Shown piece after piece: positions 1 to 13,944 of a DNA stretch of 13,944 nt; positions within the stretch are counted from its first letter, which is position 1, and the number at the start of each line of letters is the position of its first letter. The DNA lies in assembly GCA_033442325.1 (NCBI GenBank), contig JAWQFM010000002.1, positions 1,470,666 through 1,484,609 of the forward strand, written 5' to 3'. The position numbers were made by a program, and so were the translations under genes. Below the pieces are notes generated by a model. That model was not told the DNA's origin and did not search any database. It saw only the letters and a list, made by a program, of their open reading frames with translations. This stretch comes from Salpingoeca rosetta (lineage: Eukaryota; Protista; Choanoflagellata).

Positions 1-20
1 GTGTGTGTGTGTGTGCGTGT

Positions 21-26
<6 letters not shown>

Positions 27-101
<75 letters not shown>

Positions 102-529
102 CATCTGTCTGTCTGTGTCTGTCTGTGTGTCTGTGTCTGGGTCTGTGTCTGTGTAACACTCTATCTGGCCAACTTCATGAGTTTCCCACGCATGTGTGTG
201 TGTGTGTGTGCGTGTGTCTACCGTCGTCTGTGCCGCCTTCGTGGATCACAGTTGTTGCTCCTCGCATGCTCGCTCTCACTGCCTCCACCACCCGCGCCGC
301 GGCCACGGCAGCACGATGCAGGGCACGGTGTGGGCGCTGGTGGCTGAGCGGCTGGTGACGGCGGCAGCATCACAGGCGCCTTTGGAAGATGACTTTGAGA
401 AACAGCCTCTGGATGAGGCGTCGTTTCATCCCGGCATTGAGGACGTGCGAAGTGACCACGCGCGGACCTTCTTCAACCTCATGCTGACCTGCCGTGAGCT
501 CTACCACGACCTGCCCTGGGCAGTGCCAA
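27..529 (+). repeat. Left arm of ~0.5-kb inverted repeat (partner 4066-4582)
   Basis: Reverse complement of the right arm matches this segment; 316<->4279 and 529<->4066 are colinear with identical translation through ...HDLPWAVP. The outer boundary falls inside a (GT)n tract and is approximate. Confidence 0.95.
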
Positions 530-2544
530 AGTGGGGCCTCGCTGTGGTGTTTGAGGATACACCAATGAGGTCACTCGACCAATGGCTCGATAAGTTTCAG
601 GCAGACCTCCTTGGTTCCACAGCACCTGACGCTCTGCCTTCTTCTTCGTCTTGTGACCAGCGTGGTTCCGATGGGCGTGCCGCGCATGCTTCGTGGCTGG
701 AGAACCGCTTCCTTGTGTACTGTTGGCTTGGTGTCACATGGGACGGCAGGTGTTCCTTTTTGCGTTCCAGGCTGCGCGCATCACAGCCAACGACTGCCTT
801 TTCGCGTCGCTTTCGGCATTGCGGGCGCGTGATGTTTGCTTCTTTGGACGATCTCGAGTCTTGGGCGGCGGAAGTGATGCATGCACGCTGCAGTTGCGGA
901 CATGAGCACAGAGCAAGCGTTGCACTAGCGAACACATCAGAGGCACAGGACGACAGCCGCGCCCGTGATCAGCCAGAACATCAACTCGAGCAGCACGACA
1001 CGGCCTGTGCTGGGGAGGCAGGTGTGCTGCCACAACAGCGAGCTGACGATCAACATGTGGCTGCATTAGTGCCGGCCTTGTTCTCCCTGAACGCGACACT
1101 GCAGGGACAGGCTGACGCTGATCGCTGGCATGAGCTGCGCTCCACTGTTTTGGCTGGTGCACGTGGGGACAGGGTGATGCTGGAACTCGGGCAGTCGTTG
1201 TCGTCGCTCGCAGGCGATCACATCGACAACCTTATCATCACTTCCTGGCGTGCGACACTCGGGTGTGCCAGAATTCGGGATGTGGAGCGCGTGACGTGGG
1301 ACTGCAAGTTGCGCGAACAACCCGCTCCTGGTGGCCTCCTGCTTGACAATGTGCAGCACTTTGAAGCACGTGCTCGCGCCTCCCTGCTCAACCTTGATGC
1401 CCTGGCCGATATTCCGAGCATCCAGCTGTCAGGTTGCGACGAGGAGGTCGTCGACCTCTCGCCCCTACCTCGAGTGAAGAAGCTTGTTATCGAGCGCACG
1501 ATCGCCGTCAACTACGAGGCAGCTGTGGCGGCAGTTGAACACGTTCGTCTCGGAAGCACCATGGAGCTGAAGACTGGCACTCTCCACGCCACTCATGTCA
1601 ACCTGTCGCGCACGAGGATTTCAACCGACACGCTGCACCTGCCAAATGCCACCCACATCAAAGCCCCGCGGTCAGGTGTAAAACGGCTGGTCTTCCCACC
1701 CTCCCTCGTGTGGCTTGACATTGAGGGTACTCCACCCGAGATGCCCGAGCTCAAGCATGCGGAAGTGTTGAAACTGCGCACATCCAGTGAGCCACTGTCG
1801 CACGATACCGTGGTCCGTCTCAGTCGCTGCGCGAGCAAGCTCATCCTTCGTGGCCAGTGTGTGCGGCGCGTGAGTGACCTGTGCGGCATCGCAGACAATG
1901 TGCATATCAGCGCGGAGGTGCACGATCTCGACGTGGCAGCGCCCGCCTGTGTGCAGGAGCTGTGTGTGCTCGCGGAGGGCGATGTACGCTGCGAGCTGCT
2001 GGGGCATGTGCCGCGCCTGGTCATTCTTGGTCTGCGCGAGCACCCGATCCGTGATGTCCACCTGCTGTCGGGTCGCAAGTATCTTCATCTCCTGCGCTGC
2101 TCGTTGGACGGGGAGGTTTCGGACTGCGACTTTCTGTTCCTTCAAGCCGCTTATGGGCGCGCTGCCTTGGCATCTATTGGCTCGCTCCTTGTGCACCAGG
2201 CGACTGTGTACGGTCGTTCTTCTACGCTGCCGGCCAGTGACAGCCACGACTCTTCTGGCGTCGCTGGCCTGGTTCTCACGCAGTGTCGTGACGTGTTTAT
2301 GTGTCACCTTCGGCACTGTATTATCAAGGACCTCGCCTGCTTCCAGGGTGTACAACGCCTGATTGTGGACTGCTGCGCATTTGATGTTGGAGACACGCTC
2401 CTTCCGCGTTCTGGTTGCCTTGTCCTGCGCCACTGCGCCAGCACGGACAAGCGGTGGCGTTGGCCTGATGTTGCCCTGGTTGACCGCTCACCGGAGGAGA
2501 TGGCGCGAGTGTTGCTTGCGGGGCGAGAGCGGATGGAGGCATGA
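316..2544 (+). CDS. Intronless ~742-aa protein with F-box-like N-terminus and degenerate leucine-rich-repeat-like C-terminal half
   Basis: Uninterrupted ORF from ATG 316 ([13 protein letters not shown]) to TGA 2542-2544; the ORF-track start at 196 lies in a GT microsatellite. N-terminal '[10 protein letters not shown]...[12 protein letters not shown]' resembles a split F-box. Segments such as [52 protein letters not shown] and [18 protein letters not shown] are LRR-like. The C-terminus is conserved in the paralog fragment at 3774-4064. Domain calls are by eye. Confidence 0.8.
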
Positions 2545-2573
2545 GGATAGAAAGGGGGAGAGGTAGTGAGTGA

Positions 2574-2613
<40 letters not shown>

Positions 2614-3010
2614 ATGCGTGCCTGCCTTTGTTTGTGTTTGAATGTTACAGGAAACGGGTCACATCCCTTTTCTTGTTTCTTGTGTTTGCTGCTCGTTGTC
2701 CTGCTCGTTCCCTTTGGTCCTGCCATAAACAACCACCTTCGTTCTCTTCGTTCGTGCGAGTGCTTGTGTCATAAGAAATGAATGACCGCACCTATGTAAT
2801 GTAAGATGACAACTAATGAGGTGACAACATCTGTTTCCTTCAGTTGAGTTCGCGTTGGGGCATCGTGTTTGACTGCCTGCAGGCAACGTTCATTCACGCT
2901 CTTCAGGAGTACAACACGTGCAACACACCCATGCAGCACCAGAAAACAAAACAAAAGACATGTATGTAGTGAAGTAGTGAGTGACATACCACTCCACCAC
3001 CTGGCGAAAT

Positions 3011-3019
3011 AAAAAAAAA
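3011..3019 (-). terminator. Pol III oligo-T terminator of tRNA-Leu
   Basis: A9 on + (T9 on -), 7 nt downstream of the tRNA 3' end. Confidence 0.85.
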
Positions 3020-3026
3020 TATCGTA

Positions 3027-3110
3027 TGGTCGGGACGGGATTCGAACCCGCGCCTGCAGAAGCAGATTACGACCTGAACGTAACTCCTTGGACCGCTCGG
3101 ACACCCGACC
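3027..3110 (-). tRNA. trnL-CAG: tRNA-Leu (anticodon CAG), intronless, long variable arm
   Basis: Minus strand GGTCGGGTGTCCGAGCGGTCCAAGGAGTTACGTTCAGGTCGTAATCTGCTTCTGCAGGCGCGGGTTCGAATCCCGTCCCGACCA. Acceptor GGTCGGG/CCCGACC, anticodon stem TTACG/CGTAA with loop TT-CAG-GT, variable stem CTGC/GCAG, T-loop TTCGAAT, discriminator A. Confidence 0.96.
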
Positions 3111-3177
3111 AACACTTCTGTTGTGATGATGATGAATCAATTTTCTTTATGAAAGCATCTAAATTTTTCGCCAGCCA

Positions 3178-3238
3178 CCACAAGCCACAAGCCACAAGCC
3201 ACAAGCCACAAGCCACAAGCCACAAGCCACAAGCCACA
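3178..3238. repeat. (CCACAAG)8+ heptamer tandem repeat
   Basis: Eight perfect CCACAAG units plus a partial unit. Confidence 0.95.
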
Positions 3239-3658
3239 GATGCTGCGCTCAGCACCACGTCCCATTTGTGTTTGTTTCACTGCCTGATGACTTTGTACTT
3301 TGCTGGAGGGAGGATAGCGTAGGGTTCCGAGAAAGGTAGTCCGTCACGTTATTTAACGCAACAACGCGACAACGCGACAACGTAAGAAACGGGCACTGCC
3401 ACACCAGGTTGAAGGAACTAGCCAAAGGACTAACACATGTTTGAACGGCCAACATGATAACGTACTGGAGCAACAGGGAGCAAAAGATTGATAACGGAGA
3501 GGAGGCGGATCGCGCGGTTGGTGAGCAACGGAGAAGAGATGGCATGCTCTCTCGTTGGATTTGAAGGTGGCCGAGCTTGATGGCAAAGGGTTGGACTGGA
3601 TGCTGGGGGGATAAGCACGACACTCATGCGCAAGCATGCACAGACGCCCACACACACT

Positions 3659-3709
3659 CACACGGACACAGAGACACGCACACGGACACAGAGACACGCA
3701 CACGGACAC
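3659..3709. repeat. 20-bp tandem repeat CACACGGACACAGAGACACG x2.5
   Basis: Direct reading; lies in the CA-rich 3' flank of the minus-strand paralog. Confidence 0.85.
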
Positions 3710-3773
3710 CAGTACATCAAGCGCACGTACAGACACACATACAAACACACACATACGCACGCACGCGTGTGCA

Positions 3774-4279
3774 TTATGGCTTGAGTTGCTTCCTGCCTGC
3801 CAGCAGCACGCGGGTGACGTGCTCCGGCGGACAGTCCACAAGTACAAGGTCGGGCCAATGCCATCGCTCATCCGTTGTGCAGCAGCAGCGGAGCACGAGG
3901 CAGCGAACGTGCTGGAGTTGGTCCGGGCTGTCAAACTCGTAGTCGTTCAATATCAGGAGCTGGACACCGAGGAAGCAAGAAAAGCCCTCAATCGTGCACC
4001 ATCGAAGACGCGCCTTGAAGACATCGTGCAGACGCACAATCGACAGCCGACCACTGCCACGCACCTTGGCACTGCCCAGGGCAGGTCGTGGTAGAGCTCA
4101 CGGCAGGTCAGCATGAGGTTGAAGAAGGTCCGCGCGTGGTCACTTCGCACGTCCTCAATGCCGGGATGAAACGACGCCTCATCCAGAGGCTGTTTCTCAA
4201 AGTCATCTTCCAAAGGCGCCTGTGATGCTGCCGCCGTCACCAGCCGCTCAGCCACCAGCGCCCACACCGTGCCCTGCAT
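3774..4279 (-). pseudogene. Chimeric, internally deleted and frameshifted paralog of the 316-2544 gene
   Basis: 4279-4066 is the identical N-terminus. 4064-3774 encodes VRGSGRL...CLVLRCCCTTDERWHWPDLVLVDCPPEHVTRVLLAGRKQLKP*, about 45/97 identical by manual alignment to the last 97 aa of the + gene, with the stop at the equivalent position. The two parts are out of frame (215 nt apart); the ATG frame stops at 3953 (108 aa). Confidence 0.8.
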
Positions 4280-4491
4280 CGTGCTGCCGTGGCCGCGGCG
4301 CGGGTGGTGGAGGCAGTGAGAGCGAGCATGCGAGGAGCAACAACTGTGATCCACGAAGGCGGCACAGACGACGGTAGACACACGCACACACACACACACA
4401 TGCGTGGGAAACTCATGAAGTTGGCCAGATAGAGTGTTACACAGACACAGACCCAGACACAGACACACAGACAGACACAGACAGACAGATG

Positions 4492-4582
<91 letters not shown>
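4066..4582 (-). repeat. Right arm of ~0.5-kb inverted repeat (copy of ~27-529)
   Basis: Contains the same upstream region, ATG (4279) and first 71 codons as the 316-2544 gene. Differences I found are microsatellite unit counts: (TG)8 vs (TG)9 and (GTCT)10 vs (GTCT)9. Confidence 0.95.
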
Positions 4583-4584
<2 letters not shown>

Positions 4585-4812
4585 TGACTGTGGCTGTGAC
4601 TGGCAACTCACGTAGTCACGTCGAACGTATCCCCTGTCCTTGCTTGCCTCCTTCCCTCTCGTCAGTCAGTGCAGCCGCGCGCGATACTGATCGTCCTAGT
4701 GGTGGCGAGGATAGAGTAATGTGAAGATGGGGCAGAAGGAACACGGGCGAGTGCAGAGGAAGACAAGGGGGGCAAAAGGACAGAAGGTGGGGGGGGGGGA
4801 ATGGTTGGCAGC

Positions 4813-5075
4813 ACAGACAGACACAGACGCGCAGACACAGACGCGCAGACACAGACGCAGACACAGAAACACACACACACACACAGACACACAGACACAG
4901 ACACGGACACACACACAGACACATAGACACAAAGACAGACACAAAGACAGACACAAAGACAGACACAAAGACATATAGACACACACACAGACACAGACAC
5001 AGACACACACACACAGACACACACACACACAGACACACACACACACACACACAGAGAGAGAGACACATAGACACA
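4813..5075. repeat. Compound (CA)/(CAGACA)/(AGACACAAAGAC) microsatellite block
   Basis: Direct reading. Confidence 0.9.
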
Positions 5076-5217
5076 TAGAGGCGCTATGTCTGTGGCTGGC
5101 CACTTACGCTGTTGCAAACAGTGGTGTGATGGTGTCTCTCCTTCTCTCGTGGCTCGTTCGGGAGGACTCGCTGCTTTCCTTTCTCTGGCTTGCTTCACTT
5201 GCAGAGCACAAAACCAC

Positions 5218-5227
5218 AAAAAAAAAA
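5218..5227 (-). terminator. Pol III oligo-T terminator of tRNA-Gln
   Basis: A10 on + (T10 on -), 4 nt downstream of the tRNA 3' end. Confidence 0.85.
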
Positions 5228-5231
5228 GATG

Positions 5232-5303
5232 AGGCCACGGAGAGGATCGAACTCCCATTTTGAGATTCAGAGTCTCATGTACTAGCCATTATACTACGCG
5301 GCC
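5232..5303 (-). tRNA. trnQ-CTG: tRNA-Gln (anticodon CTG), intronless
   Basis: Minus strand GGCCGCGTAGTATAATGGCTAGTACATGAGACTCTGAATCTCAAAATGGGAGTTCGATCCTCTCCGTGGCCT. Acceptor GGCCGCG/CGTGGCC, anticodon stem TGAGA/TCTCA with loop CT-CTG-AA, T-loop TTCGATC, 72 nt. Confidence 0.96.
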
Positions 5304-5421
5304 GTCAACTTGTTGTTGTCTGCCGACACGTTGCCAACATCAAACACGCTGGCCTCCTCAACAACAAACAAACGGCTGCTGCACTGTCCTCTTGGCATTC
5401 ACTCACACTGATCGCACAACT

Positions 5422-5540
5422 CACGCACACACGCACACACGCACGCACACACGCACGCACACACACACACACACACGCACACACACGCACACACGCGCGC
5501 GCGCGCGCGCACACACACACACACATACACACACACACGC

Positions 5541-5572
<32 letters not shown>
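5422..5572. repeat. Alternating purine-pyrimidine (CA)n/(CG)n tract upstream of the MFS gene
   Basis: Direct reading; includes about (CG)8 at 5494-5510. Confidence 0.9.
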
Positions 5573-5599
5573 TGTCACACACCACTGTGATGGTGGAAG

Positions 5600-7515
5600 A
5601 TGACGCACCAACACCACCAACACCACCAACACCAGCACCACCAGCACCACCACCACCACCAGCCCCAACCTGCACTGCCATCGAAGCAGGCTTCGTCGCC
5701 ACCCTTGCTGCGCGTGTATGAGGACTGCCTGGACGCGGCAGGGTATGGCAGGTTTCAGCTCGTCCTCCTGTTCCTGTGCGGCGCAACCCTCTTCGCAGAT
5801 GCCACAGAGCTCATGCTCCTCCCCTTCCTCCAGCACAAACTGCAAGCGCCGCCCAACACCCACGCGTACGAGCACACCGGCCCGGGTACCCGCGACACTC
5901 ATGATGTCACCCACGACACGGCCCTCGTCTCCTTCTGGGTCTTCATCGGCATGCTCGTTGGCGCGCTTGTCTCCGGACCACTGGCAGATGTCTACGGCCG
6001 CCGCGCCGCCACCATCTTCTTCACGCTGGTCGTTGCTGTTGCTGGGCTTGCCTCTGTCGCTGCCGCCTCCTCCTTCCAGCAGCTCGTGCTCATGCGCTGC
6101 TGCACGGGTTTTGGCGTGGCCGGCACCCCTGCCGCCCTCACCCTCTACACAGAGCTCACCCCGCGCGCCCATCGCGGCCGCCACCTCATCTACTTCATGC
6201 TCTTCTTCTCCGTGGGCGCCACCGTTGAGGCCCTCCTGGCGTGGTCCGTGCACACCATGGGCGTGCGCGCCCTACTCGCTGTCTCGGCTGTCCCGGCCGT
6301 CATCGCATCGGTTGCTGTCCTCCTCTTCCTTCCGGAGTCACCGCGCTACCTCATCCTGCGGGGCCGCGTGACCCGTGCATCGGACATCCTCACCACCGTC
6401 GCCGCCAGCAACCACACCCTGCATCGCACGCAGCCCCATATTCGCCGTCTCCTGCACCACTGGCATACCGACCGCGATGGCACCTCGCGCGGGGACAGGT
6501 GCCATGCTTTTGCGTCCACCACTACAGACGCCGATGTCTCTCCCACCACAGACGCTAATGTTTCTCCTAGCACCACAGACGCTGACGTCGCACCGACCAC
6601 CAACAGCAACACCAGCACGAACAACAGCAAGGGCGACAACAACACGAACAACAGCAAGGGCGACAACAACACTACCACCACCACCACCACCACATCTGAT
6701 ATCACCACACATAGCACATTGCCATCGTCCGTTGGCTCTGTGCTCTCGCTGTATGCGCATACGCTGCTGAGGCAGCTGCACCGCGATGCCGCATTCGCGC
6801 GCCGCATCGTGGTCTTCGCCACAGAGTTCTTTCTCATGGCCTTTGTGTACTACTTCCTGGTCATGTTCAGCGTCACCTACACCACCCTCGGCGCGTCGCA
6901 CATGTCTGCGAGCGCGTATGTGAGCGTTGCTCTGGCCAACCTGGCGGAGATACCGGGCCTCCTCATTGCCATGCGCTTGCTCGACACGGTTGGCCGCATC
7001 AACACCATCACCATCATGTTCTTCGTCTGCGCTGCCGGCACCCTGCTGCTGGCGTGGACCCCGCTGCCCCACAGCAGCACCACGACCACGACTACGACCA
7101 CCACGACCAACACCAGCAGCAGTGATAGCGCGATGCCGCCCGTGGTGTGGCAGGTGGTACGCGACGGTCTCATGTTTGTGATGCGCGCCAGTGCGCTTGG
7201 CTTCAACCAGTCGCTGTGGATCTTCACCACAGAGTCGTTCCCCACCAGCCTGCGCGCGTCCTCCCTGGGGTTCACCACGGCCTTTGCGCGGGTGGGCGGG
7301 GCGCTCAGCCCCTTTGTTGTTGGGCGCATGTACGTTGCTGCGCCGACGGCCACCATGTATCTTGTTGCCGCAACTGCTGCCCTTGCTGGCATTCTTATCC
7401 GCAAGGTACACCACTATCGTTGTCAGGGGGTGGGTGAGGGGGGGGGGATGGTTGTTATTGTGTTTTGCTGTGCTGTGCTGTGCTGTGCTGTGCTGTGCTG
7501 TGCTGTGCTTTGATC

Positions 7516-7588
<73 letters not shown>

Positions 7589-7757
7589 GGAGATGTGTGG
7601 AGATGCTTGCTAGCTTGCTCGCTGACTTTTGCACTTCTATTGCTCCTGCTCAACCGCTCCCTGCTCCTCTAACACACAGGTTGGAGAAGACACTGCTGCC
7701 AAAGGGCTGGTTGAGAGCGCGCAAGATGGGCCACAGGATGGTGTACAGGATGCATGA
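5600..7757 (+). CDS. Major facilitator superfamily transporter, SV2/SVOP-like (sugar/organic ion transporter clade); exons 5600-7405 and 7680-7757, ~627 aa
   Basis: MFS motifs: GYGRFQ before TM1, [16 protein letters not shown] (motif A), [51 protein letters not shown]. Phase-0 intron AAG|GTACAC (7406) to CTAACACACAG| (7679) gives terminal [25 protein letters not shown], resembling the PETKG-type C-terminal motif. Confidence 0.9.
7465..7588. repeat. (TGCTG)n and (GT)n microsatellites within the MFS intron
   Basis: Direct reading. Confidence 0.9.
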
Positions 7758-8018
7758 GGTGTCAGCGGCGTTCTGTTACGGCCGCTCGTATGCTGCAGGT
7801 GCGTTGAGCGCGGCAGCGCCAACACGCGCGCACACACTCCACACTAACCACGTTATTGTATGCTATGCTAAGCTAAGCTAAGCTAAGTGAACCGGCTAGT
7901 CATCGCCACCACACGCAATCGTTTGATGTATGCATGAAGTACTGCACTTAAAACGAGCAACGTGTGGTGACCGAAGGCTATGTCCAACAACGTGGCACCA
8001 CGAGCGAGGGCACACACA

Positions 8019-8051
<33 letters not shown>

Positions 8052-8155
8052 GCACACAAGCACACAAGCACACAAGCACACACACAAGCACACACACACA
8101 CACACACACACACGGCATTCCTCGGAAAACACAGCAAGTCTTCCCGACTTTCAAC

Positions 8156-10261
8156 ATGGAAGACGAGCAGCAGAGAAGACCCACACCAGCAGATGGTGGC
8201 GATGATGATGCAGACCTTGATGCGCTGTTTGATGGGGCACTGAACCTGTACGACCAGGTTGTCGTGGAGGGTGATAAGAACGCGGCTCAAACAGCAGCAA
8301 CAGCAGCACAAGCAGCTATGACCGCAGAAACGCCGAGGGCACGGGCGCCTGCAACCACGCAGGATGCTGATGATGATGCTGGTGATGATGATGACGATGA
8401 TGATGCGCTTGGGGACTCGCTTGCAGAGGGCCTGCTGAAGGGCCTGGAGGGATTTGAAACAGACGACAAGGCTGTGCAGCTCATGCAACAGCTCATGTCT
8501 GCCATGGGTACGCCAGAGGACAGCACACAGCCAGTACCGAGCACGGGCAGTACCAATGACCAACACGACAGGAATAAGCACCCCCAAGAACACCAGCAGC
8601 AGGCGCAGCAGGCACAGCAAGCGCAGCAAGCCAACACCCCAGGATCGTCATCATCGTCCTCAGCATCGACTAGCACGTCGGCGAAACCGCGAGCCCAGTC
8701 GCAGCCGGATGACTTGAGCGCCGAGTTTGCACGCATGCTTGAGCAGATGGCCACCCGCGCTTCACAGGTGCAGCAGCTGTGTGTGTGTGTTTAGTGTGCG
8801 TGCGTGCGTGCGTGTGTGTGTGTGCGTGCATGTGTGTGTGTGCGTGCGTGCATGTGTGCGTGCATGTGTGTGTGTGTGTGCGTGTGCGTGTGCGTGTGTG
8901 TGTGCGTGTGTGTGTGCGTGTGTGTGTGCGTGTGTGTGTGTGTGCGTGCGTGTGTGTTTAGTGTGCATTGTGCATGCTCTGCGCATGTACATGGCAGTGT
9001 TTTGCTGCGTGCACAAGCGACGCTGTGTTTGCAGCTGTCAGTGTGACCGTTATACGAGCAACAGCATGGCTTTGCCGTGTCCTTCCTTCCTCCCCACATA
9101 TGCGCACACACACACATACACACACACGTGTCTGTCATCGCTCGTCTCCCTCCTGTTTCGGGATGTGTCTGTGGCTGACTGCTGCTGCGCATCTGCACAG
9201 GGTGCCACCGCACCGGAAGCCGGCAGCGGCGGCGTCAACGAGGCCTCGCTGGACGAGCTGGAGTCGATGGTCGACGATCTACTGCGGCAAACAGGCCTCT
9301 CGGTCAGCAGCGACGACGACGACGACGACGACGATGATGATGATGATGATGATGGGGCTGAGGAGCATGGGGAGGGGACGTCTGGCGTTGGTTTGGGGCG
9401 ATCGAAGCAGCGGCGCAGGCAACGATCAGCGGAGGATGGGCAGCAGCAGCCGCCTGGTGTGTATGCGTGGCGCGTATTGCTTGGCGTGCTTGGTGTTGAG
9501 TGAGGAGCAGGTACTGATGGCCACATCACATCACAACACTTGAGCGAGCAAGCAAGCCACGTATCTCACTGCCCGTGCGCTGCATCTGCCACTCCCATCT
9601 CCGTGTGCTCCTTGGTTGTGCAGACGACCTCTTTGATGACATCCTGCAGACGTTTCTTGCCAAGGATCTTGTCTATCCGTCACTCAAGGAGCTTCGTGAC
9701 AAGGTGCACGCGCGCGTGTGTATGCATGCGTGTGTACGCGTGTGTAGTTCTGTATGCAGGATTATTTGTGTGTTTGCGTACTCTTGTGTGTTCTTTGTCA
9801 GCATGCCTGAACTGTTTGTGCGATCGGCCCACCTACGTGTCTGCATGCCTGCATGTCTTTGTGCCTGTGTTGCTCATGCCTCGCGCTGCTGCTGCCGCCT
9901 CCAATAGTACCCGTTGTTCCTGGAGGAGCGCGGTGCCGTGCTCAGCCCGTCAGAGTGTGCGCGGTACACGTGCCAGCACGAGATTATCACGCGCATCTGT
10001 GTGGAGTATGAGCAACCCTCACCGCAGCTTGACACTGTTACCGATCTCATGCAGCAGGTGCGTGCTGCACGGTTGCATGTCCTGCTCTGTGTGTGCATGC
10101 ATGTGTGGGTGGCTGTGTGTGAGCGTATTGGCTGCCATTGTTTGTGCAGTCGCAGCCTTGAGCGTGCACGCAACGTGTTGTGTGACTTTCCTGCCTCCAC
10201 TGTCCTTGCCCTTCTGCCCCCCCCCCCCCATCTGCGCGCAGCTGGGTCACCTCCACGATCA

Positions 10262-10341
<80 letters not shown>

Positions 10342-10493
10342 GCACACACACACACACACACATACACACACACCCCACACAGATGCCCCCGTACGGAACA
10401 CCCCCCGAAGAGCTGATGAAGAGCGTTGGGTGTGGAGGTGGATGAGTCTGGGAAAGCCAACCATGGCCACACAGGGCTGGTCCATCCTCATGA
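8156..10493 (+). CDS. PEX19: Peroxisomal biogenesis factor 19; exons 8156-8767, 9201-9456, 9624-9703, 9908-10057, 10383-(10445 as assembled, possibly ~10493)
   Basis: N-terminal DADLDALFDGALNLY matches the PEX3-binding helix pattern. The spliced C-terminal domain DDLFDDILQTFLAKDLVYPSLKELRDK|YPLFLEE...ARYTCQHEIITRICVEYE...VTDLMQQ|MPPYGTPPEELMK matches the Pex19 consensus (SKDVLYPSLKE..KYP..L, DLMQQ..G.PP.EL). All four introns are GT-AG with compatible phases 0,1,0,0. The 3' end is uncertain. Confidence 0.9.
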
Positions 10494-10502
10494 AAACCTC
10501 AC

Positions 10503-10764
10503 NNNNNNNNNNNNNNNNNNNNNNNNNNNNNNNNNNNNNNNNNNNNNNNNNNNNNNNNNNNNNNNNNNNNNNNNNNNNNNNNNNNNNNNNNNNNNNNNNN
10601 NNNNNNNNNNNNNNNNNNNNNNNNNNNNNNNNNNNNNNNNNNNNNNNNNNNNNNNNNNNNNNNNNNNNNNNNNNNNNNNNNNNNNNNNNNNNNNNNNNNN
10701 NNNNNNNNNNNNNNNNNNNNNNNNNNNNNNNNNNNNNNNNNNNNNNNNNNNNNNNNNNNNNNNN
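10503..10764. other. Assembly gap
   Basis: Run of N. Confidence 0.99.
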
Positions 10765-10800
10765 GTGTGTGTGTGTGTGTGTGTACGTGTGTGTGTGCAG

Positions 10801-13944
<3,144 letters not shown>

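Follow-up and report, generated by a model that had tools for sequence, protein, structure and literature searches.

The locus raises the question of why one 5′ gene end stands, on opposite strands, in front of two different 3′ parts. The window that we analyzed is a stretch of 13,944 nucleotides of Salpingoeca rosetta DNA (contig JAWQFM010000002.1, here C2, positions 1,470,666–1,484,609). An initial annotation had described two near-identical arms of 0.5 kb facing each other in this stretch, and alignment of window positions 11–533 with the reverse complement of 4062–4582 bore this out, with 517 of 523 columns matching. Chance cannot account for a match this long. Of the six differences, three are substitutions in the 61 nt next to the contig end; the others are a TG-unit indel at 193–194 and a boundary mismatch at 530/4065. 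Each arm was also said to carry an upstream region, a start codon, and the first 71 codons of a gene; we indeed found about 300 nt of upstream sequence, an ATG (at 316 in the left arm and at 4279, minus strand, in the right arm), and 71 identical codons in both. The description of a single 5′ end shared by a full-length gene and a truncated relative is therefore correct.

The proposed length of the repeat, 0.5 kb, did not hold. The inverted repeat in the window is the inner tip of two mirror copies of about 21 kb each in the 2013 draft assembly of S. rosetta, which was later rescaffolded (Table 1). The left arm is truncated at window position 1 by a run of 5,279 N, on the far side of which its mirror copy resumes, and the right arm is gap-free from 4062 to 10502 and made up farther out of short contigs (0.6–1.1 kb) and N runs. 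Mirror copies were recovered in at least seven separate stretches, all in mirror order, and are about 99.6–100% identical wherever both are assembled. No difference was found in the 1,721 nt of window 8525–10245 and no mismatch in a stretch of 869 nt, and two others are identical at 99.65% over 1,143 nt and at 99.6% over 3,049 nt. The lowest arm-to-arm identity, 96.8%, is caused by one low-quality contig end; between window 8525–10502 and its mirror, all 63 differences are confined to the final 257 nt before the contig end. In this assembly, the locus thus combines inverted arms longer than 8–10 kb, an arm-to-arm identity above 99%, and a unique spacer, as a palindrome does.

Table 1. Features of the locus. 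Positions are those of the window unless preceded by C2.
Feature	Position	Strand	Description
Left arm	C2:1449582–1471198		21,617 nt including N runs
Right arm	C2:1474727–1495759		21,033 nt including N runs
Left arm, inner tip	1–533	+	(GT)n/(CTGT)n tracts, ~300 nt upstream, ATG at 316, PTSG_01293 codons 1–71
Gene A (PTSG_01293)	316–2544	+	742 aa, intronless single open frame
Invariant-motif coding stretch	460–543	+	79–89% nucleotide identity in ~28 other family loci
Palindrome spacer	534–4061		3,528 nt; gene A body, tRNA-Leu, paralog B C-terminal remnant
tRNA-Leu(CAG)	3026–3111	-	Spacer
Paralog B remnant	3774–4085	-	Last ~103 codons; frame open to a stop at the family's usual position
PTSG_01294, chimeric model	3774–4279	-	137 aa; exon 1 4279–4052, exon 2 3959–3774
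Right arm within window	4062–13944	-	Extends ~11.2 kb past window end, to ~C2:1495759
New junction	4062–4066	-	Gene A identity stops after codon 71 (Pro); GTG common to both partners
tRNA-Gln(CTG)	5231–5303	-	Right arm
MFS transporter gene PTSG_01295	5600–7513	+	Right arm
Mirror match	8525–10502		C2:1463405–1465386, left of the N run
Mirror match	10997–11388		C2:1462760–1463152
Mirror match	11690–12455		C2:1461689–1462458
Mirror match	13080–13944		C2:1458248–1459115
Mirror match	C2:1485728–1486868		C2:1454597–1455738
Mirror match	C2:1492714–1495759		C2:1449582–1452625

Based on these data, we conclude that the locus is probably the center of a young palindromic segmental duplication, a 46-kb palindrome in S. 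rosetta. The duplicated DNA contains an FRS2-like docking-protein gene, a C2H2 zinc-finger gene, a PARI-like gene, Pex19, an MFS transporter, and tRNA-Gln, as well as the upstream region and first 71 codons of the LRR-family gene. The gene order in the 2013 annotation is itself mirrored, running IRS-PTB, C2H2, Pex19, and gene A on one side and the chimera, MFS, Pex19, C2H2, and signal transduction on the other. At the outer edge, the right arm ends in a (GT)n tract and the sequence immediately beyond it is single-copy, and the left arm meets a 100-N gap. The symmetry is imperfect: the left arm contains one additional tandem unit, about 2.06 kb long, and the gap sizes deviate (5,279 N where 3,942 nt would be expected). 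The spacer has no second copy in the genome except for matches to simple repeats and distant paralogs. The interior had been given as about 3.5 kb with the full gene body, tRNA-Leu, and a diverged alternative C terminus; size and contents stand, the gene body being what remains of the 742 codons after the first 71, and the C terminus lies in a different frame from the 71 codons that precede it.

We then asked which arm is the parent. When the N-terminal, middle, and C-terminal parts were compared by BLAST with family ORFs from 21 loci, all relatives were only 35–56% identical, and the parent of the 71 codons was therefore decided by family collinearity. On the gene A side, the reading frame continues past codon 71 in full collinearity with the family, and the two residues that follow, Lys-72 and Trp-73, are invariant. 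The right copy switches at the same codon to a tail that is 47% identical and out of frame with the copied codons. The left copy would thus be ancestral, because its 71 codons run straight into gene A, collinear with all paralogs, and the right copy would be derived. The tail is what is left of a second family member, paralog B, and shares 47–49% identity with its nearest relatives; the genome holds no close copy of it.

The junction suggests how the derived copy may have arisen. Its inner end appears to have joined midway into a convergent old paralog at a 3-nt GTG microhomology, and this join would have deleted the first ~640 codons of paralog B, leaving an out-of-frame stump. FoSTeS/MMBIR-type events generate inverted duplications through replication template switching or fold-back repair. 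The locus resembles such events in having an inverted derived copy a few kilobases from its template, microhomology of 3 nt or microsatellite sequence, and loss of the DNA that was replaced. In the likely origin, which we infer from the junction sequences, the outer one being partly hidden by a gap, a single event of replication or repair switched templates twice at GT-rich microhomology. That the arms are nearly 100% identical may be a sign of youth, of gene conversion between them, or of both. The spacer could be flipped by ordinary homologous recombination between the arms. Because its two flanks share one sequence over about 21 kb, such flipping would be neutral, and the proposal that a flip would swap which outside flank drives which product is not supported.

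The truncated relative is annotated as PTSG_01294. To follow its frames, we translated both exons and checked them against the protein in the database. The two frames are joined solely by the annotated 92-nt GT..AG intron (4051–3960); direct read-through from the 71 codons yields 37 unrelated residues and a stop at 3953. A word search of 5.8 billion proteins with the 108-aa read-through product matched PTSG_01294 of the reference annotation alone, and a 32-nt junction pattern had zero matches in metagenome and genome contig collections. In the antisense rows of the genome paper's supplements, the read counts for PTSG_01293 and PTSG_01294 were all zero. With the 137-aa product, the annotation most likely patches over a pseudogene.

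The most serious alternative, although we consider it unlikely, is that the 21-kb segment is single-copy and was placed twice, mirrored, by the Newbler/Arachne hybrid assembly, with one center-arm junction being chimeric or a homology-driven false join. The left tip of 533 nt is about one read long, lies at a contig edge, and adjoins the 5,279-N run. Past 10502, the right arm dissolves into small contigs and gaps, and the left arm is gapped exactly where the right is contiguous. Every part of the arms is in fact well assembled in one copy only, the other being a gap or contigs of about 1 kb. A true identical repeat should give this one-sided pattern, but it also suits a single-copy region placed twice. 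The MFS gene fits it as well, with a single assembled copy whose mirror would fall in the N run. The copies differ only in an error-like manner, by homopolymer indels, microsatellite units, and low-quality contig ends. In the papers that we found, every later S. rosetta assembly was made by rescaffolding the contigs of 2013. Finally, the inner end of the repeat coincides with the 3′ edge of the invariant-motif stretch, and a motif kept in ~28 paralogs could seed a false overlap.

Against a double placement, both junctions (533/534 and 4061/4062) lie inside one gap-free contig of 10.5 kb (window 1–10502), in an assembly with an average genome coverage of 33x (PMC4054682). The first junction is in frame and exactly collinear with the family. 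The second shares just 3 nt between its partners and is therefore no repeat-induced overlap. Shadow contigs built from error reads should fall at one and the same place instead of 20–45 kb away in perfect mirror order. By our reasoning, moreover, none of the library types described for the genome (PMC4054682) should give inverted chimeras, and the 454 jumping-library design should yield same-strand chimeras rather than inverted joins.

Two further explanations fared worse. It is very improbable that the culture was mixed, with a single-copy segment present in two variants that differ by an inversion of the 3.5-kb center and whose junction reads were merged into a false palindrome. We reasoned that the paralog tail followed by the reverse-complemented 5′ end and the 5′ end followed by the inverted center are identical in sequence, so that such a mixture would supply both junctions in window 1–10502. 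However, it requires a right-hand partner for the center, either the body of paralog B or another flank, and none is assembled near the locus: we found no orphan paralog B body there, and a search of the right flank gave the C2H2 zinc-finger gene instead. The mixture also leaves the mirror-ordered outer contigs unexplained and, lacking inverted repeats, offers no substrate for recurrent inversion. A gene-conversion patch, in which two old convergent paralogs exchanged just their 0.5-kb 5′ ends between the (GT)n tract and the conserved motif, is the natural reading inside the window, as its boundaries match the microsatellite and the family motif. We hold it to be even less probable, since upstream regions of 40%-identical paralogs would give no homology to initiate conversion, and the identity runs about 21 kb beyond the gene on the right and resumes past the N run on the left. 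This model was dropped on the ~21-kb reach of the arms.

The weakest reading, and one that we find scarcely credible, is a programmed inversion in which regulated recombination between the arms selects the full-length or the short product, as in bacterial phase-variation segments (Hin/Gin-type, the fim switch, and shufflons): the locus shares with these the inverted repeats around a segment and a common 5′ end facing two alternative 3′ parts, but it belongs to a eukaryotic host, a choanoflagellate, its arms are ~21 kb of gene-bearing chromosome, about 1,000 times longer than crossover sites of tens of base pairs, a flip leaves identical DNA upstream of both genes and the same connections either way, with no regulatory effect, the short product depends on a putative intron through sequence that is coding in the paralogs, and 14 other family loci have no near-identical internal repeat, the sole other match of at least 93% linking loci on different contigs. 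No recombinase or transposase domain was detected by Pfam in gene A, the MFS gene, or nine more ORFs from the spacer and arms in the window, in agreement with the initial annotation, which saw no recombinase gene. Its comparison with phase-variable constant-5′/variable-3′ loci thus lacks support, and the evidence favors its fallback of a one-off duplication or a misassembly. A bacterial reading of the window (table-11 ORFs with an invertase switch) was rejected as well, the sole homologs being S. rosetta proteins, and a trypanosomatid origin, suggested by the CA/GT-rich spacers, was rejected on the same grounds. The switch reading is best dropped.

The palindromic duplication has its closest counterparts on mammalian sex chromosomes, where palindromes of the human, primate, and mouse X and Y have arms longer than 10 kb, more than 99% identity, a unique spacer, and genes in both arms and spacer (PMC8327919, bioRxiv 10.1101/800185). 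The arms of these palindromes undergo gene conversion, and intrachromatid recombination flips their spacers, mostly without harm (PMC8327919). The S. rosetta locus falls in the same size class and matches them in identity, unique spacer, and coding genes. Rearrangements in the mammalian palindromes cluster at the spacer and inner arms, and here, too, it is the inner breakpoint that destroyed a gene. In contrast to them, the S. rosetta palindrome lies on an ordinary chromosome of a unicellular animal relative, and whereas conversion and spacer inversion are documented in mammals, it is known from the assembled sequence of the 2013 draft alone.

If the palindrome is real, a 46-kb structure has gone unremarked in the reference genome of the main model among choanoflagellates, and it doubles about eight genes, among them the FRS2-like phosphotyrosine docking protein, Pex19, and the MFS transporter, and copy number becomes relevant to S. 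rosetta knock-outs and gene counts. Should it prove an artefact, 46 kb of chromosome 2 would need re-assembly, and the models PTSG_01292, PTSG_01294, and PTSG_01296–01298 would be untrustworthy. A broader proposal is that many young near-perfect inverted duplications, template-switched at GT microsatellites and near tRNA genes, remodel the lineage-specific receptor-like families of S. rosetta, sometimes giving expressed chimeric mini-genes such as PTSG_01294, with spacers perhaps in both orientations in culture and, as one instance, the 46-kb palindrome, which doubles the FRS2-like gene and at least seven more. We regard this as decidedly doubtful; if many such duplications do exist, they would represent a genome-wide process that has yet to be described for choanoflagellates.

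Finally, we examined the family to which gene A belongs. Its product has an N-terminal helical region with a 20-residue invariant motif, followed by an LRR-type solenoid. Pfam searches gave no family for gene A at E ≤ 0.1, no LRR model and only two chance-level non-LRR matches for six family members at E ≤ 1, and no matches for the stump and spacer ORFs. A profile built from six members matched internalin LRR regions with E = 1.9e-11. In the AlphaFold2 model of the gene A product, residues ~250–740 form a confident β-solenoid; the best structural matches were all LRR proteins (TLR9, TLR13, TLR8, BRI1, and TIR1), with low TM-scores of 0.2–0.3. By profile and predicted fold, gene A and its paralogs are thus predicted to be LRR proteins, and the locus illustrates the loss and recombination of members in a lineage-specific LRR gene family.

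A repeat search of the window returned two pairs of inverted arms, 195-533 with 4062-4400 (339 nt) and 11-215 with 4378-4582 (205 nt, 98%), which merge on gapped alignment into 523 columns containing six differences. The three substitutions, at 16, 26, and 61, all fall in the (GT)n tract adjoining the contig edge, a single TG-unit indel lies at 193-194, and a mismatch (530/4065) marks the inner repeat boundary. Each arm carries the upstream region, the start codon (ATG at 316 on the left and, on the minus strand, at 4279 on the right), and the same 71 codons of the gene PTSG_01293 (316-2544, plus strand), hereafter gene A. The features described in the initial annotation were thus recovered by repeat search, alignment, ORF analysis, and ARAGORN, far beyond chance.

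The repeat had been given as 0.5 kb, a figure that has to be replaced: matches beyond the window end and beyond the adjacent run of N extend each arm to ~21 kb. Window position 1 directly follows 5,279 N (C2:1465387-1470665, where C2 denotes the scaffold), so that the outer part of the left arm is not seen in the window. Self-comparison of all DNA fetched placed reverse-complement copies of window 8525-10502, 10997-11388, 11690-12455, and 13080-13358 to the left of this run, and searches of S. rosetta's own genome traced the arms further outward (see table). The homology ends inside a (GT)n tract, which leads into single-copy DNA on the right and into a 100-N gap on the left. In the original annotation, the left side reads PTSG_01289 (IRS-PTB), 01290 (C2H2), 01292 (Pex19), and 01293, mirrored on the right by PTSG_01294, 01295 (MFS), 01296 (Pex19), 01298 (C2H2), and 01299 (signal transduction). 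Pex19 is therein annotated twice, as PTSG_01292 (519 nt) and PTSG_01296 (1,161 nt), at C2:~1463400-1465386 and window 7964-8794 onward. They represent the left-arm and right-arm copies, which gaps interrupt in different ways, and neither model is therefore likely to be complete.

Components of the probable palindrome, traced arm matches, and tRNA genes (window positions unless prefixed C2)
Feature	Position	Strand	Left-arm counterpart	Detail
Left arm	C2:1449582-1471198			
Right arm	C2:1474727-1495759			
Spacer	534-4061			3,528 nt
Right-arm match	13080-13944		C2:1458248-1459115	0 mismatches
Right-arm match	C2:1485728-1486868		C2:1454597-1455738	99.65%
Right-arm match	C2:1492714-1495759		C2:1449582-1452625	99.6% over 3,049 nt
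tRNA-Leu(CAG)	3026-3111	minus		ARAGORN
tRNA-Gln(CTG)	5231-5303	minus		ARAGORN

Where both are assembled, the two arms are nearly indistinguishable. Window 8525-10245 shows 0 differences in 1,721 nt from its mirror copy; the 63 differences of the 8525-10502 alignment are all confined to the 257 nt next to the contig end, where they resemble the degraded tail of a read crossing a (CA)n tract. Outside this alignment, the arms differ by homopolymer indels of one base, by one-unit microsatellite changes, and by two substitutions. A ~2.06-kb unit that corresponds to window ~11160-13358 occurs in two tandem copies in the left arm (C2:1458248-1463152; comparison loci L021 and L033), joined at a (CA)n tract, and only once in the right arm. 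Only one copy of the MFS gene is assembled.

Some N runs agree to the base with the sister arm (301 N for the 301 nt of window 11389-11689; 196 N at 784-979 of L021, completing 510 nt against 510), others deviate by 0.1-1.4 kb, and some may be masks over known sequence, not true gaps. GT/CA, CTGT, and related microsatellites are dense in nearly every intergenic stretch (window 1-190, 4420-5110, 5400-5600, 7500-7600, 8000-8110, 8770-9000, 10250-10370, and 13210-13360); the mapped outer arm boundary and the tandem-unit junction both lie inside such tracts. A CA-rich imperfect repeat at 3615-3775 (ACACGGACACAGAGACACGC-like units) recurs at well above 50 genomic sites with 73-81% identity and resembles a dispersed family of simple repeats more than a mobile element.

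The six-frame genome search with gene A matched 4061-4279 (residues 1-73, 97%) and, separately, 3783-4085 (residues 639-740, 48%). The latter piece is a complete family C-terminus with an open frame and a stop at the usual family position, the remnant of an old family member (paralog B, 3774-4085, minus strand). Even its best relatives reach no more than 47-49% identity, no close copy exists anywhere in the genome, and its nucleotide identity to the tail of gene A is 59%, versus 99-100% for the arm. The right-hand "gene" is a chimera of two pieces of different age. The diverged alternative C-terminus proposed earlier is therefore present and complete, but it is out of frame with the 71 copied codons; direct reading past these adds 37 unrelated residues before a stop at 3953. 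The reference annotation bridges the two frames with a 92-nt GT..AG intron (4051 to 3960), and exon 1 (4279-4052) plus exon 2 (3959-3774) translate exactly to the annotated 137-aa PTSG_01294. Because this "intron" excises sequence that codes in all paralogs, the gene model is, in our view, most likely an annotation patch across a pseudogene. The lengths in the genome-paper supplements, 2,229 nt for PTSG_01293 and 414 nt for PTSG_01294, agree with both genes here.

The left junction (533/534) appears to be ancestral, because the reading frame of gene A continues unbroken across it, collinear with all paralogs, and P71 is followed by the invariant K72 and W73. The right junction (4062-4066), where the 5' end is joined to the tail of the convergent paralog B and the partners have only GTG in common, appears to be new, which would make the right arm the derived copy. 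This copy would have taken the place of the opening ~640 codons of paralog B and of any DNA past them. Given the GTG at the inner junction and the (GT)n tract at the outer end, we infer that the simplest origin would be one replication or repair event with two microhomology-guided template switches.

We consider the palindrome probably real. Both junctions share one 10.5-kb contig in a genome of 33x average coverage, the new junction lacks any repeat by which an assembler could be misled, the ancestral junction keeps exact collinearity with the gene A family, and the mirror order is kept across at least seven separate stretches. An assembly artefact is a rather unlikely alternative, to which the read-sized left tip at the contig edge and the disagreement between symmetry and gap sizes lend some weight, as does the complementary assembly of the arms: the right is contiguous over 4062-10502, where the left is a big N run, and farther out the left is contiguous where the right consists of 0.6-1.1-kb contigs between N runs. 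The underlying 2013 Broad draft combined 454 and Sanger reads in a Newbler/Arachne assembly at 33x (PMC4054682); later Hi-C or Micro-C work rescaffolded the existing contigs and added none (PMC10232365; PMC12221973). By our reasoning, the described libraries should yield same-strand, not inverted, chimeras, which speaks for a real palindrome. The new junction had no match in other public collections. The remaining probability falls to minor rivals.

The invertible switch first suggested for this locus can be set aside on every count open to testing for site-specific inversion, since either orientation of the spacer gives both genes identical upstream DNA, so that a flip cannot act as a switch, and Pfam scans of selected ORFs in the window yielded no recombinase domain. 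Arms of such length and identity would be substrates for ordinary homologous recombination, which in primate X palindromes inverts spacers often and mostly without harm (PMC8327919). The locus has the structural hallmarks of the large near-identical palindromes of mammalian sex chromosomes and would work alike; by this analogy, it is probably a further example of a known structure type. No earlier report of such a palindrome in this lineage was found in the literature.

The only homologs of the 742-aa gene A product are Salpingoeca rosetta entries named "hypothetical protein PTSG_*", and the six-frame search of the 55.4-Mb genome (68 pieces) found at least 60 family loci, mostly uninterrupted frames of 600-1,100 codons. 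This Salpingoeca-only, mostly intronless LRR-solenoid family has no Pfam match; it has a 20-residue invariant N-terminal motif, and its profile matches internalin LRRs (E = 1.9e-11). In the structural model, residues ~250-740 of gene A form a confidently predicted β-solenoid, and the closest structural matches are LRR proteins without exception; confidence is low for residues 1-120, the stretch that includes the copied 71. Convergent or tandem pairs are frequent among the members (assembly pieces C36, C4, and C25), and several N-terminal-only or C-terminal-only fragments occur in the genome, such as PTSG_11377 (173 aa). The 14 further family loci retrieved contain no near-identical repeat of this kind; apart from the present locus, the comparison gave a single match of 93% or more, between two loci on separate contigs. 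Two members on different chromosomes, L010 (C30:59787-62945) and L011 (C4:76760-79913), are 93% identical over 3.2 kb, which looks like another fairly recent within-family duplication.
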